Of a stretch of 64,000 nucleotides of DNA, positions 3,156-56,504 are shown piece after piece; position 1 is the stretch's first letter; every line of letters begins with the position of its first letter. A model generated the notes under the pieces. It did no database searches. It had not been told where the DNA came from and saw only the letters and a program-made list of their open reading frames with translations. The DNA lies in sequence record NC_070966.1. One strand, given 5' to 3'. Made by a program: the position numbers and the translations under genes.

Positions 3156-5404
3156 TGTCAATTGTAGTCGTCAATGGTCAGAACTTTGATATCGATACTC
3201 TGGATTTCTCAGAGAAGTCGAAGAGAGATGACTGGCATTCTAATGAAGGTAAGTTCATTAGGCTGCTGAAGCAAGACGTATACCTTACCTCCAAGATCTT
3301 GGAGTATGTCGTAGATAATGTGGACGATCTCATTGTAGGATATAAATCCTCTGACGGTCTTAGTCCATCGTACTTTCGTAAGTCTCTCCTCGTAGAGATT
3401 AATGAGATTCAAAGAAATGGTAAGATCCTAACAGACAATTTTATGAATAGTCTGTTCATCCGTTATAACTCTATCTTTGTTAAGGTTATCAAAGATCTTT
3501 CATCTGCAGTCAGCATTGACGAGAAGGATGAAGACTGGGTATGGACGTATGATAGCGATGGAAAGATCGTCTTTGATTATTCCCACGAAGCCCTCTCCCG
3601 TAGACGTACTCATCTGCAGAATTTCGACCGATCCATCCTTCCATTGGACTATACCAAGCTGGAAGATGTGTTTACCAAGCCTGAATTCACTGCTTTATCC
3701 AATAAACGTGTGGTATGTTGGTCTTGTGGGTCGTATAAGACCACTTTGATCCGTCAATTCATTGTCAAACACTGGCTTGATGGCATCCTTTATGCGTGTT
3801 CTACGATCGAAGAAGTAAACCTTCTGACATATGATATTGCCTGCTTCATTGGAGAAGAGAATGTCTTCAAGTTGCATCACCAGATTGATACTGATATCTA
3901 CGCAGAGTACCATAAGAATCCTGAGTTTCTGAAAGAGAAGAGTGTTGTAGTCACTACGCACTCTCGTCTCATGAAGGATCCACCTTCGATTCTTATTACT
4001 CAGATCGATGATCCACTAGGTGGAGATTCTCGACGTCAGTATGTTCTCATCGATGAGAAACCTCAGTTCTATGATCACATCAGCTTGAACAATGATCAGG
4101 TACAGAATGTGATGAATCTGAGTACAGATCTATCTCCTCGTGAAGCTCAGAAGAAATTTCGAGAAGGTGTGAAGAATGCTTCAGGTATCTTCAAGTCTCT
4201 GAAGCATAACTCTGTTGAGTTGTTGAGTAAATCATCCGTCGATCGATCTGTCAACTTTCTTGACACGAGAGTGAATCCAACTACAGGTGCTGAGTATTTC
4301 GTACCCAACATCAACATGTTGAGAGCTGAGTTCGCAGTTAGTATGATTGTGAAACAGATCAACAAGAAGATCAAGATCGATCCGAACTACGAGATCAAGA
4401 AAGATAAGAATCGTTACTTCTACAATCTAGGTGATCTGGAATTTAAGAACCTAATCATCTTTGATGGTACAGGTGATCTGATTCTCAATGAAAGTCCTGA
4501 CTGGAAGATCATCAAAACTCCTGAGACTAGTTTTAATTTCAAAGGTAGTTTTAATGAGATTGAAAGTGATATTCGTAGAAGACTCGTAGGTAATGATCTC
4601 GAGCACTCCTCACAAGAATTCGATAAGATTATTCAATATCTTATTGGATTGACTGAGAAGCATGAGAAGATCTTCGTAGTCTCTTGGAAGGACATGAAAG
4701 GTAATGAAGATGATATGCCTAAGACAGGTGCTATCATTGACAATAATGTTCTTGCTAAGTTGACTGATCAGAGGATTGTCCAAGCGACTGACGATCTGAA
4801 TGCATACATTAAATTCAGGATTCCTCTAGAGCTTAGACATAAATTCGAGTTTACATACTACTTGTCAGGTAAAACTCGAGGTACGAATCGTTATGTTGAT
4901 TGTGATGCAGTTGTATTGTTAGGTAGTTTCTATATTCCTAATCATGCTATTGCTATGATGAATGAACAGAATAATGCGAAGATGACTAACGATATGCATT
5001 CAATGGCTGAAATCGTTCAAGCTATCTATCGTACGAGAGCTCGTAAGCTCAAACCTGTTGATGTTTATTATACATCTGATTGGAGTAAGCAACTCATTGT
5101 TGATACAATGAAGTATATTAATGCTCCGATCAGTGATGAATTCACATCAGACATACAGACTAAGATGAGATTGTTCTCAATGCAGTATGGAGTTAATATA
5201 ACTCCGACTACGACTAAGCTAATTAAACTATTAGCATCTAAGTATTCTGATCTAATAGCAGGTGATACATCTGAATATCAAGTTCCACCTGATGAAGATA
5301 GTCGAGAATTTAAGAGAGGTATTCAAAATCTCTTGAATAAAGTTGATGAATTGAGATACGAGGATAAAAAGTATTCGAGATTCTTCAAGGTAATACCCGT
5401 TTAG
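3155..5404 (+). CDS. Divergent SF2 helicase-like protein (origin-binding/UL9-like candidate)
   Basis: Walker A-like CGSYKTT, motif II-like VLIDEKP, FDGTG, motif VI-like QAIYRTRAR. Confidence 0.55.
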   Translation: MSIVVVNGQNFDIDTLDFSEKSKRDDWHSNEGKFIRLLKQDVYLTSKILEYVVDNVDDLIVGYKSSDGLSPSYFRKSLLVEINEIQRNGKILTDNFMNSLFIRYNSIFVKVIKDLSSAVSIDEKDEDWVWTYDSDGKIVFDYSHEALSRRRTHLQNFDRSILPLDYTKLEDVFTKPEFTALSNKRVVCWSCGSYKTTLIRQFIVKHWLDGILYACSTIEEVNLLTYDIACFIGEENVFKLHHQIDTDIYAEYHKNPEFLKEKSVVVTTHSRLMKDPPSILITQIDDPLGGDSRRQYVLIDEKPQFYDHISLNNDQVQNVMNLSTDLSPREAQKKFREGVKNASGIFKSLKHNSVELLSKSSVDRSVNFLDTRVNPTTGAEYFVPNINMLRAEFAVSMIVKQINKKIKIDPNYEIKKDKNRYFYNLGDLEFKNLIIFDGTGDLILNESPDWKIIKTPETSFNFKGSFNEIESDIRRRLVGNDLEHSSQEFDKIIQYLIGLTEKHEKIFVVSWKDMKGNEDDMPKTGAIIDNNVLAKLTDQRIVQATDDLNAYIKFRIPLELRHKFEFTYYLSGKTRGTNRYVDCDAVVLLGSFYIPNHAIAMMNEQNNAKMTNDMHSMAEIVQAIYRTRARKLKPVDVYYTSDWSKQLIVDTMKYINAPISDEFTSDIQTKMRLFSMQYGVNITPTTTKLIKLLASKYSDLIAGDTSEYQVPPDEDSREFKRGIQNLLNKVDELRYEDKKYSRFFKVIPV

Positions 5405-51235: not shown

Positions 51236-52423
51236 ATGAATTTTCTTTATATCACAAGAAGCATTGATCCGCTAGCTGCTGATCATCGTCCTGAAGCATA
51301 TGATCGTTATCGATTCTATGCTCCGATGATGTCACGACTAGCTGAGATCGGTGGAGGTGACGTCTACCTTCAGACTCGTTATAATCCTAAGGATTATCGT
51401 CCTGGTGGTACGATTGAAAGAATGGAAAGAAATTTCCGTCTTCCTAAGAAGTACAAGACTGGTGATAAGATTGATATGATCGTATGTGCCATCTTCTGCC
51501 CAGACGATGACATTACATTCAATGAGGATCTGAACAAGTTTCGTCAGACTCTTGAAGATACAGGTGCTCCGTATATCTATCATGACTCTGACAAAGAATT
51601 CTCTACTCAGGACGATCAGCAAGATCTTTTCCATCCAGGAAATAAGAACTATTTCCTTCAGACAATATCTAAGCTTCCAGAGGATGATATTCTCCGATCC
51701 CGACTACGCTGCGTGGCTACGTCGGTTCCGGATGCAGATTATCATCAGATTCTGAAGGATAATCTCAAGGTCGATGTAACGTATCTACCTGCTACGTTCT
51801 GGGGAGACTGGAAAGATAAGTTTGGATACACTCCTCTTTCAGATCGTAAGTACGATCTGACATTCCTTCGTGACTTCTATCTGAATCCGAAGCGTTCAGT
51901 CATTTTGAAGAATCTTGGTACTGGTGTATCGGATATCAGTGTTCTTCTTGGATCTCGTAGTGGCGACCCTTCTAGTCGTGGAGGATACATCAGCCATAAG
52001 GTTCCGACGATTGATTTTGATCAGATGCGTCAAGGAGCTACGTACAATGATCTATCGAAGTACATGTCTAAGTCTCGTCTGACTCCGTCTACGAGTATTT
52101 ATATGCGTGTCACTTCTAAGCTATTCGAAGCAGCTGAGAGTCGTACTCTAGCACTACTCTTCTCTCCGTGCTTCTATTCAGACGTAGTTGATCATCCTTC
52201 TGAGGCAGATGCTTATCTGAGTCAACTTGCTCTTGTAATTCCAGGATCCACTACTGTAAGTCAGTTGATTACACGTATTCGTAGTCTGACTGATGAAGAA
52301 TACTTGAAGCTTGTTGAGGTTCAGGATAAGCTCGTTGAGACTGTATTCAGTATCAAATCTGATTACATCACAGGCAAGCTGACCAAGATCATCACGGATT
52401 ATGTAGGTAATGTGAATGGCTAA
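51236..52423 (+). CDS. Putative GT-B glycosyltransferase (DNA beta-glucosyltransferase-like)
   Basis: C-terminal half YDLTF..., TSKLFEA, LITRIRSL..EEY....QD loosely resembles T4 BGT; next to the epimerase and GT-A genes. Confidence 0.45.
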   Translation: MNFLYITRSIDPLAADHRPEAYDRYRFYAPMMSRLAEIGGGDVYLQTRYNPKDYRPGGTIERMERNFRLPKKYKTGDKIDMIVCAIFCPDDDITFNEDLNKFRQTLEDTGAPYIYHDSDKEFSTQDDQQDLFHPGNKNYFLQTISKLPEDDILRSRLRCVATSVPDADYHQILKDNLKVDVTYLPATFWGDWKDKFGYTPLSDRKYDLTFLRDFYLNPKRSVILKNLGTGVSDISVLLGSRSGDPSSRGGYISHKVPTIDFDQMRQGATYNDLSKYMSKSRLTPSTSIYMRVTSKLFEAAESRTLALLFSPCFYSDVVDHPSEADAYLSQLALVIPGSTTVSQLITRIRSLTDEEYLKLVEVQDKLVETVFSIKSDYITGKLTKIITDYVGNVNG

Positions 52424-53294
52424 TGTTCTAGTTACTCTCATTACCAATCGACCAGATATTTCTTCGGAACGATGGATCGGTACCATCGGAAAGCTATCTA
52501 AGCTTTCCGAGTACCATGATATGACCTACTCGATTCTTCTACAACCTCCTTTTACAGTAGAAGACTGTGATAAAGTTCGTTCTCGAGTAGTTGAAGCACT
52601 CGGTCCTAAGAATCAGGTAGTCGTAGAGCATTTTATTAATCCTCCAGGTCCATTCAATTTTAGAACTGCTCGAAATCAGGCTATGTTGAATGTACCGTAT
52701 CTGAATACTTTTGACTACGTTCTTATCACTGACGATGACTTCAAGTTCAGTGGTCCTACTCCTAAGGGATATGACTCATGGGAACGTTATCATCAGGCTA
52801 TTAAGTATCTCGATGAAAACCGTCGATGCGGTGGTGTATTAATCAAAGGTATGTTTGGATCTCCTCCAGTCGATAAGGGTGGAAATGAGGTATCAAAGGT
52901 ACATGACGAGTACTACTCGACCAATCGAGGCATTCTTCATCGTAATGTGATGAAGTACGATAACGTAGATTGGATCTACTCAAATGAATGCTTCGATTAT
53001 CCTTCTGCTCTCGAGGATGCAGCAGCTTGTTTCTCTCGAATTGAGCTCGGCTACTATTATGCTCGTATCTGGAAGTCACCCACCACACCTCTTCCTGTGA
53101 AGCAGACATGTGCTGATGACATCCCTGATGACAATATCTACTCGCGACATATGGTCAATGAAGTAGGTATTGGTAAAGCTATCCGTGAACGTTACGACGA
53201 TCCTACATGGGAAGTCGATCAGAAGCGTATGCCTAAGAAACTCAACAATCTTAAACTCGAAGCCATGAACAATCGTGGATGGGTTGTAACCTAA
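52416..53294 (+). CDS. Putative GT-A (GT2-like) glycosyltransferase
   Basis: FRTARNQAM, YVLITDDDFKF (DxD), LEDA. Confidence 0.6.
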   Translation: MANVLVTLITNRPDISSERWIGTIGKLSKLSEYHDMTYSILLQPPFTVEDCDKVRSRVVEALGPKNQVVVEHFINPPGPFNFRTARNQAMLNVPYLNTFDYVLITDDDFKFSGPTPKGYDSWERYHQAIKYLDENRRCGGVLIKGMFGSPPVDKGGNEVSKVHDEYYSTNRGILHRNVMKYDNVDWIYSNECFDYPSALEDAAACFSRIELGYYYARIWKSPTTPLPVKQTCADDIPDDNIYSRHMVNEVGIGKAIRERYDDPTWEVDQKRMPKKLNNLKLEAMNNRGWVVT

Positions 53295-53305
53295 GGAGTC
53301 TCGAC

Positions 53306-53545
53306 ATGAAACATCTTCTTGAGAAAGCAACGACTCTCGTCAAGCAGTCTAATAAACTGACTCTGGAATACCGTAAGTCTCCAGATGAATTGAAATCTAA
53401 GACTCAAGAGATCGTCAAGCACTTTCTCGAATTCAACGAGATCGAATCGAAAGAAGATTTCATAGATCAATTGTCGTCCAAATCTGAGGAGACAGGTAAT
53501 ATGGATTACCTGTCTGCAGCTGAGATTATCCGAGAGTACTCTTAA
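53306..53545 (+). CDS. Hypothetical protein
   Basis: AAGGAG RBS before ATG 53306. Confidence 0.75.
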   Translation: MKHLLEKATTLVKQSNKLTLEYRKSPDELKSKTQEIVKHFLEFNEIESKEDFIDQLSSKSEETGNMDYLSAAEIIREYS

Positions 53546-53850
53546 TGTTTAAAATTACTGTAGAGTCGTCTCAACCTGTTAAGAGTATCAACATTGAGTT
53601 CGGTGAAACTCAGGAGACGAAGGCTGAATTCTATCCTGTACCGACCTTTGAGACTAAAGGTGTAGAGAGTCTTAAATACGAGACTCCTCCTTCATCTGAG
53701 TCATATGAAGACGTTCTAGCAAGACGAGCATCGACTGTATCGACTACTCCTGTAAAGCCTAAAGAGACTGAGACTGCTCCAGAAGTAGTCGAGGATCTCA
53801 CTAATCGACCTGCACTTGTTGATCAATCCTTTGCAGGATCTACTTTCTAA
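53545..53850 (+). CDS. Hypothetical protein
   Basis: TAATG-coupled; MFKITVES. Confidence 0.75.
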   Translation: MFKITVESSQPVKSINIEFGETQETKAEFYPVPTFETKGVESLKYETPPSSESYEDVLARRASTVSTTPVKPKETETAPEVVEDLTNRPALVDQSFAGSTF

Positions 53851-53858
53851 GAGGTAAT

Positions 53859-54824
53859 ATGAAAACTGTATTAGGTCTTGATCCTGGGTACGGAGACTTC
53901 AAGGTATGCTTCGGTAATTCTAAAGGGATTATCTCTAAGCTATACAAGTTCAACTCCGTACTAGGTCGTGTTGATGTCAGTCAACATATCAACGATACTC
54001 GAGTTTATGGATATAAAGGTACGACCTACTATGTAGGTGAGATGGCCTTGAAACTTGAGTCATCTCGAATCATCGACTTGATGTCTTACAACAATCTGGA
54101 GACATTCTCTCCTCTCCTGATTGAACATGTCATCAATGAACTAGGAGAAGTTCCAGATATCGTCGTATGTGGTCTTTCGATCGCTCACGTTGACTATTCA
54201 GGATACTATCGAGATGCGATTCTTAACTATCTTGTTAAGGAGAAGAATCTTCCAATCAAGGATGTCCGCATCATCCCACAAGGTGTAGGTGGTAAGTTAA
54301 CGTATGACAAGTATGGTCGTACATTCCCTGCCCTCACATCAGAATTCAGTGATGACAACAACTATGTAGGTTGTGATATTGGATTCAATACACTCGATGT
54401 ATTCCATGTCATTCAGAACAAGGTATCTCCTAACTTGATTAGAGGTATTGAGAGTCAAGGTGTAGTCAAGATCGTAACTCGACTTCTTGAGTATATCAAG
54501 AATGACTACAGTCTGGAGTTCTCTGTTAAGGAAGGTAAGAACATCCTTGATAATGGTCAATTTAAGATCCGTGGACGTGAATTTGATGTCACCAAACAGA
54601 TTGAAGTGATCAAACGTTCTTATCTTGAAGAAGTCAAGGAACTCATCGAGAATGAATTCGGAGCAGTACTTGACAAGGTCGAGAAGATCAAGATGTTTGG
54701 AGGAGGTTCATATCTCTTCAATACGATGAATGACTCCTTCATCGAAACTCCAGAATCTCGTGCTGAATACTATAATTCCATCGGGAATTATCTACATGGC
54801 TTGACAATTGTCGAGAAAGATTAA
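53859..54824 (+). CDS. ParM/StbA-family actin-like ATPase
   Basis: Phosphate-1 GLDPGYGDFK, connect PQGVGG, phosphate-2 CDIGFNTLD, adenosine GGGS. Confidence 0.88.
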   Translation: MKTVLGLDPGYGDFKVCFGNSKGIISKLYKFNSVLGRVDVSQHINDTRVYGYKGTTYYVGEMALKLESSRIIDLMSYNNLETFSPLLIEHVINELGEVPDIVVCGLSIAHVDYSGYYRDAILNYLVKEKNLPIKDVRIIPQGVGGKLTYDKYGRTFPALTSEFSDDNNYVGCDIGFNTLDVFHVIQNKVSPNLIRGIESQGVVKIVTRLLEYIKNDYSLEFSVKEGKNILDNGQFKIRGREFDVTKQIEVIKRSYLEEVKELIENEFGAVLDKVEKIKMFGGGSYLFNTMNDSFIETPESRAEYYNSIGNYLHGLTIVEKD

Positions 54825-54828
54825 TCTT

Positions 54829-54868
54829 AAGGTCTACTAGAAGAGATTCTAGTAGACCTTTTCTTTTT
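54829..54868 (+). terminator. Intrinsic terminator
   Basis: AAGGTCTACTAGAA/TTCTAGTAGACCTT stem followed by TTCTTTTT. Confidence 0.85.
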
Positions 54869-54877
54869 GAGGATAAA

Positions 54878-55237
54878 ATGCTCAAATTAGATAGAAGTGT
54901 CAAAGAGTCTGAGTGTCTACACTACGAATTTGATATTAATGGTGGTTATAGCATTACACTAAAAATCGTCTTTGATGATACTGAAGAGAATGCGATTCAC
55001 TTTGATTCTCATGATCACGATGTTCAGATTAATGGATTTAAATATTATATTTTAGACTCAGATACATACAGTAATGGGACATCAATGAGGATTATGAAGA
55101 TATCGTCTACAAATGATGATAGTGCTAAATACCTGATGTCTTATATTGAAGGTTTTATCATCAAAAATAAATTAGGAAACTCTAGCGGACTTCGATATAG
55201 ATCTTATATACGATCAGATCAACATTCACTCAAGTGA
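54878..55237 (+). CDS. Hypothetical protein
   Basis: GAGGA RBS. Confidence 0.7.
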   Translation: MLKLDRSVKESECLHYEFDINGGYSITLKIVFDDTEENAIHFDSHDHDVQINGFKYYILDSDTYSNGTSMRIMKISSTNDDSAKYLMSYIEGFIIKNKLGNSSGLRYRSYIRSDQHSLK

Positions 55238-55246
55238 GGACAGAAG

Positions 55247-55975
55247 ATGGCTCGTTGCTATGTAGGATGTAGTGGATTCTCGTATAATCATTGGAATGAT
55301 AACTTCTACCCTGCAGGAGTAGAGCGGTTTTCATTTTATACGAGTCAATTTGATTCATTAGAGATCAATAGTTCATTCTACAGATTACCTAGTGCAAGCG
55401 TATTCTACTCATGGTATCGACGATCACCTGCTCATATGACATTCACTGTGAAAGCTCCTCAGACGATTACTCATCGTAAGAAGCTAAAGGATGCTGACGA
55501 TATAGTTCAGAGATTCTATGAGAATACTCTTGAGCTAGGTGACAAGATGAAATGTGTCTTATGGCAGTTACCTCCTAATTTCTCCATAAGAATGTATGAT
55601 CGTGTCAAGAAATTCTGTGACAGTATTCATAACAGATTTCCTAATTCAGCATTCGAGTTCAGACATCCTTCATGGATGCAGACTCACGTACCTCAACTTC
55701 TATCTGCATACGACTTTGAGTTTGTACGTACAGATTTTCATAAATACGTAAATGTATCCATGGATGGATCCTCGTCTAAATTCCAGTACTATCGATTACA
55801 TGGACCTACAGGTCAGTATCACGGTCGCTACACTGATGAGTTTCTTGAGAATATAGCTGATCGTCTAACGGATGGATCATTCGTATTCTTCGATAATGAT
55901 AGTGGAGGTCAAGCTCCTAGGGATGCTAAAAGATTAATCAAAATTCTAGAGACAAGAAATGAAATTAAATTATAG
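55247..55975 (+). CDS. DUF72 (YecE-like) protein
   Basis: VGCSGFSY..W...FYP, EINSSFY, FTVKAPQ.ITH, LWQLPP, EFRH.SW, YYRLHG, FFDND. Confidence 0.92.
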   Translation: MARCYVGCSGFSYNHWNDNFYPAGVERFSFYTSQFDSLEINSSFYRLPSASVFYSWYRRSPAHMTFTVKAPQTITHRKKLKDADDIVQRFYENTLELGDKMKCVLWQLPPNFSIRMYDRVKKFCDSIHNRFPNSAFEFRHPSWMQTHVPQLLSAYDFEFVRTDFHKYVNVSMDGSSSKFQYYRLHGPTGQYHGRYTDEFLENIADRLTDGSFVFFDNDSGGQAPRDAKRLIKILETRNEIKL

Positions 55976-56504
55976 AGCATATGCAGGAATTGGATCAAGA
56001 AGTACTCCTCCACATATTCTTGAATTTATGAGAATTCTAGCATTCAAGCTTGGATCTCAAGAAGATCCGTGGACTGGTCGATCAGGTCACGCTGATGGTG
56101 CAGATGATGCATTCGAAGTAGGTATGGAACAAGCTAATGGACCTATGGAGATCTTTCTACCGTGGAGAGGTATGGCTAACAGTCGATGTAAGAGTGATTC
56201 TCCGTATTACGAAATCAAAACAATTGCTTACGATCTAGCTTCTAGGATTCACCCTAAATGGTACGGATTAACTCATGGAGCTAAGAAACTTCATGCTAGG
56301 AATACTTATCAAGTCTTAGGTTACGATCATCAGACTTGGAGTAAAGCTGTTGTATGCTATACTTCTGACGGTCTACCGATTGGAGGTACTCGTACAGCGA
56401 TTAAGATAGCAGAGATGCACGGTATTCCGGTTATCAATCTAGGTGATCCTGAGTGTAAATACGAAACTCCTGATCAAGTTGTGGAATATTTAAACTCTCT
56501 ATAG
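55959..56504 (+). CDS. SLOG-superfamily (DprA/Smf-like) protein
   Basis: YAGIGSR.TP, RSGHADGADDAFE, LHARN..QVLG, GGTRTAI. Confidence 0.75.
   Translation: MKLNYRAYAGIGSRSTPPHILEFMRILAFKLGSQEDPWTGRSGHADGADDAFEVGMEQANGPMEIFLPWRGMANSRCKSDSPYYEIKTIAYDLASRIHPKWYGLTHGAKKLHARNTYQVLGYDHQTWSKAVVCYTSDGLPIGGTRTAIKIAEMHGIPVINLGDPECKYETPDQVVEYLNSL

Follow-up and report, generated by a model that had tools for sequence, protein, structure and literature searches.

A widespread actin-like protein of large lytic phages and its acidic partner family: a candidate filament system without a centromere

What does a lytic phage do with an actin-like protein when nothing resembling a centromere lies beside its gene? 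The question is raised by a three-gene module in a stretch of 64,000 nucleotides from sequence record NC_070966.1 (hereafter the window, whose coordinates are used throughout unless another record is named). The module consists of two small genes, orfA and orfB, and the gene of an actin-like protein (ALP), followed by an intrinsic terminator. Most of what is known of phage cytoskeletons comes from the tubulin PhuZ, found in jumbo phages that form a nucleus, and from a single prophage actin, AlpC; to our knowledge the only characterised phage actin systems are AlpAC and the ParM-type genes of plasmid-prophages. We describe here a module that is widespread (39 phage records and hundreds of metagenomic clusters), that occurs in lytic T4-like phages and that brings with it a previously unrecognised family of disordered partner proteins. 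We propose that it is an actin-like filament system without a centromere, in which the disordered orfB acts during the replication phase, either as a regulator of the filament or as its link to protein cargo, a reading for which we see about even chances. The features of the module are as follows.

53306..53545, + strand: orfA (gp262), 79 amino acids, acidic and helical; annotated start, with AAGGAG 8 nt upstream
53545..53850, + strand: orfB (gp263), 101 amino acids, acidic and predicted to be disordered; the conserved partner of ALP
53859..54824, + strand: ALP (gp264), 321 amino acids; ALP_N / Ta0583 / ParM-like fold
54829..54870, + strand: intrinsic terminator, a hairpin (54829-54860) followed by a T-run

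The module and its actin-like protein

Positions 53000-55300 are 100% identical to Rhizobium phage RHph_TM30 (NC_070966 / MN988521; TM30 below), which has a circular genome of 207,623 bp and belongs to the genus Cuauhnahuacvirus of the Kleczkowskaviridae. Nine further records are 98.5-100% identical over the same positions and, together with TM30, represent eight Rhizobium phages. In the existing annotation gp262 and gp263 are hypothetical proteins, and gp264 bears the GenBank name 'MreB-like ATPase protein' and the RefSeq name 'partition protein'; the central gene had therefore already been recognised.

The three genes are translationally coupled. The stop codon of orfA overlaps the start codon of orfB in TAATG, and the 8-nt spacer between orfB and the ALP gene, GAGGTAAT, holds a GAGG Shine-Dalgarno sequence. 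A preliminary description of this DNA, made from the letters alone, had pointed out two small coupled reading frames ahead of an actin gene, and their coordinates are confirmed. It had also drawn an operon at 53306-54868. The coupling of the genes and the terminator support this, but the 5' boundary does not stand: orfA begins 11 nt past the preceding glycosyltransferase-like gene gp261, and neither an intergenic gap nor a promoter was seen directly before it, so that the transcription unit probably begins further upstream than orfA. At its 3' end the unit is closed by the terminator, which had rightly been called strong: it has a perfect 14-bp stem, a 4-nt loop and a T-run, with a folding energy of -21.8 kcal/mol (z = -4.0; equalled by 0 of 200 shuffles). 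Comparable hairpins lie 3' of the ALP gene in four related loci (L082, L084, L002 and L006; related loci are cited by such numbers where they must be told apart).

ALP is a genuine member of the bacterial actin-like superfamily. Three Pfam families match it above their cut-offs, namely ALP_N (PF17989; 2e-10, 41.4 bits vs a cut-off of 26.3), MreB-like_C (PF21522; 7e-12, 46.5 bits vs 27.8) and Alp7A_like_C (PF22128; 8e-5, 22.8 bits vs 22), and PHROG 691, 'partition protein', aligns with residues 2-315 over profile positions 3-323 of 329 (E 1e-30). In an alignment of 31 ALP homologs (27-59% identity), the phosphate 1 motif (D8/G10/G12/K15), the phosphate 2 motif (D173/G175/T178/D180) and the adenosine motif (G281-G283) are invariant or nearly so, and Q141-G142 is invariant; we take position 141 to be the counterpart of the catalytic E148 of R1 ParM and of Q137 of actin. 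The nucleotide-binding motifs of ALP also align with the same motifs in CorM. The AlphaFold2 (AF2) model is a two-lobed fold of the actin or ASKHA (acetate and sugar kinase/Hsc70/actin) type, with a predicted local distance difference test score (pLDDT) of 91.3 and a predicted template modelling score (pTM) of 0.89. Searched with Foldseek, it matches its best PDB structures with probability 1.00, template modelling (TM) scores of 0.65-0.72 and 15-18% identity; these are Ta0583, the 15-stranded ParM of C. botulinum, pSK41 ParM, R1 ParM, Alp12, CorM and MamK. Pfam, PHROG 691, the alignment and the AF2/Foldseek results thus agree with the earlier claim of complete actin-fold motifs and show a ParM/Ta0583-like ATPase in a phage. 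A search of PDB sequences with the single ALP sequence returned importins, which we rejected as spurious; a profile search is needed here.

Nevertheless, ALP stands as a separate clade and is neither a ParM nor an MreB in the strict sense. We rejected its assignment to the ParM/StbA family proper: the model of the ParM C-terminal domain, PF21523 (output name 'ParM_N'), stays below its cut-off (14.4 bits vs 27.4), no NCBIfam model matches ALP, the ParM model included, and in a profile search against PDB sequences CorM came nearest (9rmi, 8e-5), followed by Ta0583 and AlfA, with R1 ParM at 7e-3 in the C-terminal half only. The GenBank name was rejected as well, given that MreB structures, at 13-15% identity, rank under ParM and Ta0583, among the lower-ranked fold matches to which Hsp70 nucleotide-binding domains also belong. 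No match of ALP to Pfam MreB_Mbl was reported.

The orfB family and the search for a centromere

With the ALP gene already known, the apparent new element of the module is the orfB family. Its homology was first recognised by eye and then captured in a hidden Markov model (HMM) built from 23 seeds. By this HMM, orfB lies on the same strand upstream of ALP in 58 of the 68 loci with enough upstream DNA, usually with a gap of less than 100 nt. A reverse search of IMG/VR, with an alignment of marine-clade orfB proteins as the query, returned 39 loci, 38 of which carry ALP downstream; seven contigs had not previously been reached via ALP. The same pairing is repeated in the isolates RP13, pv27 and 150E35-1 and in the nearest metagenomic relatives. 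By a word-index profile search the family comprises at least 432 clusters at 90% identity, with lengths of 89-117 amino acids, none of which is named or matched by Pfam. No orfB domain was found in Pfam or NCBIfam, and PHROGs offered nearly nothing (phrog_38645, in 3 of 41 members). The family has gone unnoticed so far because a tblastn search with TM30 orfB alone reaches only ten Rhizobium phage records; it is detectable only by motif or profile. In full-text literature searches we found no study of the ALP clade or of its orfB partner.

The architecture of orfB is constant, with three conserved segments separated by variable linkers. The N-terminal segment of about 20 residues (1-20) is amphipathic, with alternating hydrophobic residues in a strand-turn-strand pattern. 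The middle is a variable, low-complexity linker holding a short motif (helix 54-64), which reads D-[VI]-L-A-x-R-x-A-S in the soil subclade and is of the L-D-T-D-x-D-F type in the marine clade. The C-terminal motif is roughly 25 residues long (about 78-101) and ends on an aromatic or aliphatic residue. The AF2 model of orfB (pTM 0.21) is confident only at residues 1-20, in helix 54-64 and at 80-100; it contains no folded domain and no fold of the ribbon-helix-helix (RHH) or helix-turn-helix (HTH) type. The ESM model has a pLDDT of 0.30, and the ESM Atlas structural rows that rest on it were disregarded. TM30 orfB has an isoelectric point (pI) of 4.6 and a net charge of -7; across the family, the pI is below 5.9 in 47 of 51 proteins, and the net charge of the N-terminal motif is zero or negative in 50 of 51. 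This acidic character and the lack of DNA-binding features argue against a DNA adaptor like ParR. Judged by its models, orfB looks like a disordered regulator or adaptor made of short linear motifs.

The preliminary description had taken both small reading frames to be adaptors. For orfB this fits well, as a conserved and near-obligate partner that may be adaptor or regulator, but orfA does not qualify. Its homologs (73-79 amino acids, helical and acidic) stand directly before orfB only in L080, L081, L082 and L084; in the orfA-bearing nearest metagenomic relatives, ALP identity is 54-58%. No match to orfA was found in Pfam, PHROGs, NCBIfam or the ESM Atlas, and in RP13 an unrelated small gene takes its position. 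Being confined to the nearest subclade, orfA is therefore a lineage-specific accessory outside the core pair.

Some loci depart from the simple pairing. Two tandem orfB-like genes precede ALP in L002:2741-3409 (CDS0303 and CDS0304 of Vibrio phage pv27), L018:663-1025 and L075:1950-2165, and the sole orfB type in L029, L037, L056 and L062 has a different, second N-terminal motif, M-I-I-x-I-E-D-x-P-N-I-K; together these point to duplication and divergence of the partner. In L120 orfB is present with no ALP within 3 kb. In Rhizobium phage RHph_TM21B (MN988560.1:92206-94114) the match comes in two pieces, covering 79% of 53000-55300 and 81% of orfB, and therefore indicates an indel or rearrangement in or near its orfA and orfB.

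If ALP moved DNA in the manner of a plasmid partition system, repeats would be looked for near its operon. The preliminary description had seen no iteron centromere, and we found none either: direct-repeat analysis and Tandem Repeats Finder revealed no iteron-like array at 50-57 kb. In 49 related loci, examined from 400 nt upstream of orfB through the ALP start, no 8-mer was enriched over shuffles, save in a handful of loci whose repeats are A-rich and of low complexity, or coding. The spacers in these loci are short and A+T-rich. A TATAAT-like -10 element recurs regularly in the 50-100 nt that separate orfB from ALP in the marine clade (L007, L013, L022, L023, L025, L028, L031, L060 and L075), suggesting that ALP may have its own promoter there, unlike the tightly coupled gene of TM30.

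At some loci the distance between orfB and ALP grows to 0.4-1.6 kb and contains inserted genes, which were labelled from sequence motifs and not by a family scan. They include homing endonucleases of the HNH type (L036, L048, L049, L125) and of the GIY-YIG type (L057), nucleotidyltransferase-like genes (L018, L069), cytidylyltransferase-like genes (L033, L038) and an HU-like gene (L062). We considered such inserts as a third component of the system and rejected this, the set of genes being mixed. Their mixed nature, often with homing endonucleases, indicates instead that the junction is a hotspot of mobile insertion.

Distribution and genomic setting

The ALP clade comprises 39 sequenced phage records and 73 IMG/VR loci. 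By tblastn, at 38-46% identity, it is found in Vibrio phages (pv27, Va1, phiKT1024, 150E35-1, Va2 and others), Ralstonia phage RP13, Acinetobacter phage Ab1-TPeters and fifteen Campylobacter Eucampyvirinae records. The carriers have myovirus-type genomes of 110-210 kb, the exception being the partial 53-kb record vB_CcoM-IBB_35. A search of 72,556 plasmids did not find the clade; the closest genes there are of the ParM/StbA type at 24-28% identity. Its only carriers found were large lytic phages, most of them T4-like, in which it lies among replication genes. The statement in the preliminary description that actin-like proteins occur only rarely in phages is too strong in view of these records and of the existence of PHROG 691. 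More distant homologs in Yersinia phages carry the annotation 'DnaK-like chaperone'. In one locus (L115:4194-5173) the ALP homolog is split across two overlapping frames (4194-4817 and 4775-5173), which reflects a frameshifted pseudogene or else a fault in the assembly.

In TM30 the module, whose ALP gene is single-copy by a search of the phage record, lies within a co-directional block exceeding 60 kb. Structural genes are missing from this block, which encodes ribonucleotide reductase (RNR), ThyX, dUTPase, helicases, SbcCD, topoisomerase II/gyrase subunits and a DprA-like protein. Ligase, clamp, a gp32-type single-stranded DNA-binding protein (SSB), RNase H, PolX, dCMP/dCTP deaminase and primase are neighbours of ALP in other phages. 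The 64-kb window is a single long co-directional early/middle block: all of its annotated genes are on the + strand, and its cumulative GC skew climbs monotonically. The T4 late-promoter motif TATAAATA is unenriched and absent near the module. A search of the TM30 record for tubulin genes found none; PhuZ, as the preliminary description noted, is the tubulin used by nucleus-forming jumbo phages. A PADLOC scan for defence systems returned no match.

Glycosyltransferase-like or hydroxymethyl-dU hypermodification genes (HMUD2, HMUDK) lie directly 5' of the module at 51236-53294. Sugar and hypermodification genes are also directly upstream in the nearest relatives (L080:2318-3427, L084:2395-3552 and L083:1473-3600), and this neighbourhood was not seen in the wider ALP clade. 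On the 3' side of the terminator, positions 54878-56504 hold gp265 (119 amino acids, function unknown), a DUF72 protein (Pfam 1e-55) and a DprA-like recombination mediator (phrog_768, 5e-49) whose gene overlaps that of the DUF72 protein; the pairing of these two is unexplained in a phage.

Interpretation and comparison with known filament systems

How, then, might the pair work? ALP (gp264) is likely to be filament-forming and would polymerise in an ATP-dependent manner. The conserved pairing of the two genes makes it probable that orfB would bind ALP directly. Its C-terminal motif would most likely be what docks on ALP, by analogy with the C-terminal peptide of ParR on ParM, and its N-terminal strand pair could serve either self-association or attachment to a protein cargo by beta-augmentation. 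Filaments would then be nucleated, capped or anchored by the pair, which would tie them to a protein cargo or site rather than to a DNA centromere. Expressed alongside genes of replication, recombination and nucleotide metabolism, such a module would probably organise the replication phase of infection, and assembly as well, perhaps by positioning the phage DNA factory or replisome or, at a later stage, capsids. Any specific cargo or role that we name for the pair is tentative and somewhat doubtful. Rather unlikely, to our mind, is the broader proposition of a DNA-free actin cytoskeleton common to large lytic phages of soil and sea and of Vibrio, Ralstonia and Acinetobacter, in which orfB would be both nucleator and linker to a protein cargo (procapsids or replisome), as a counterpart of the PhuZ spindle without a nucleus.

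Several points weigh against a filament system that dispenses with a centromere and relies on orfB. In the Campylobacter phages and in a small metagenomic subclade (L052-54, L058), no orfB could be detected beside ALP, and the partner is therefore not universal. A centromere may lie elsewhere in the 207-kb genome, or another protein may bind the DNA. In addition, the filament biology of Ta0583, the closest structural relative of ALP, is uncertain.

The first of these doubts concerning DNA leads to the idea of a classical type II partition system of the ParMRC kind, with orfB or orfA as the ParR-type adaptor and a remote centromere, serving genome maintenance or positioning, for instance during a carrier or pseudolysogenic state. 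PHROG 691 and the RefSeq label 'partition protein' would suit this idea, as would the ParM-like fold of ALP and the example of AlpA-AlpC, which has the same order of adaptor and actin genes and binds DNA repeats. However, neither TM30 nor the 49 related loci have repeats near the module, there is no non-coding space upstream, orfA and orfB are both acidic, and orfB has nothing like an RHH or HTH fold. The absence of the clade from the plasmids searched, and the fact that every isolate carrying it is a large lytic phage, also speak against partition, which we regard as improbable. We are equally sceptical of a host-directed cytoskeletal element, with orfB recruiting ALP to the membrane or to a host protein so as to alter or replace MreB-type organisation, cell shape or division. 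MreB structures have low identity to ALP and rank below ParM and Ta0583; the N-terminus of orfB has the alternation of a strand and is acidic, unlike an amphipathic helix; and the neighbourhood is one of DNA metabolism, not of the envelope. These observations outweigh, in our opinion, what can be said for it, which is that CorM is the best profile match among solved structures, that the target to which CorR brings CorM is the membrane and not DNA, that the N-terminal motif of orfB is amphipathic and that GenBank uses the label 'MreB-like'.

More improbable still is that gp264 does not polymerise at all and is an ASKHA ATPase, a kinase or an Hsp70-like chaperone, that serves the adjacent sugar-transfer or DNA-modification genes with orfB as its substrate or co-factor. 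One could cite for it the glycosyltransferase or base-hypermodification genes directly upstream in TM30, L080, L084 and L083, the chaperone label of the Yersinia phage homologs and the presence of DnaK nucleotide-binding domains among the fold matches. Yet it is orfB that is conserved across the clade and not the sugar-gene neighbourhood, and the top matches by fold and by profile are, without exception, filament-forming actin-like proteins, with ALP-specific Pfam matches above their cut-offs. We therefore retain as our preferred reading the centromere-less filament system with orfB as regulator or linker.

If the orfB-ALP pair is a working filament system, actin-based intracellular organisation would be common in ordinary large lytic phages, and the pair would be a compact model, made of only two proteins, in which to study the control of a bacterial actin by short linear motifs. 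The orfB homologs, all of them 'hypothetical' at present, could be annotated as ALP-associated, and caution is advised with the label 'partition protein' for ALP.

Among known systems, the closest in organisation is AlpA-AlpC of the Corynebacterium glutamicum prophage CGP3, in which an adaptor gene lies upstream, expression is early and the pair is needed for full phage DNA replication; AlpA binds alpS DNA repeats in the promoter region of its own operon (PMC4446434; PMC5539076). The TM30 module is similar in that a small adaptor gene, here orfB with its short spacer, stands upstream of a phage actin gene in one operon, and in that the AlpAC genes are linked to phage DNA replication and not to segregation of the plasmid type. 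It differs in having neither alpS-type repeats nor non-coding DNA upstream, and in that orfB is acidic and disordered, by which description, and not by sequence, we set it apart from AlpA. Moreover, CGP3 is a temperate, cryptic prophage, whereas the ALP clade resides in large lytic phages. With ParMRC of plasmid R1 the module shares the actin fold (Foldseek 4a62, 1mwm and 5aey, E ~1e-14), and its partner may, by analogy, bind the filament protein through a C-terminal peptide as ParR does. In contrast, the sequence similarity is marginal (profile E 7e-3, and PF21523 below its cut-off), the gene order is reversed, no parC was found, the partner does not resemble a DNA binder of the RHH type and the module is borne by phages and not by plasmids.

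Ta0583 of Thermoplasma is the best structural match (TM 0.72), and PF21522 and PF17989 exceed their cut-offs on ALP. However, the two proteins share only 17-18% identity, and Ta0583 is a cellular archaeal protein without a known partner of the orfB type. In the case of PhuZ and TubZ the likeness is one of function only, as a cytomotive phage filament that positions DNA or capsids in large phages; their fold is that of tubulin, for which TM30 has no gene. CorM and CorR of Anabaena are a ParMR pair that has been repurposed away from DNA, with CorR recruiting CorM to the membrane (bioRxiv 10.1101/2025.06.27.661541). CorM is the best profile match of ALP (9rmi, 8e-5), and the pair illustrates how an adaptor couples a ParM-type filament to a target other than DNA. 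The differences are that CorR is of ParR ancestry and uses an amphipathic helix for the membrane, whereas orfB was unrelated to it in every search, and that CorM has E at the position where ALP has the invariant Q141. Taken together, the precedents of AlpA-AlpC and CorMR make a centromere-less cytomotive module plausible.

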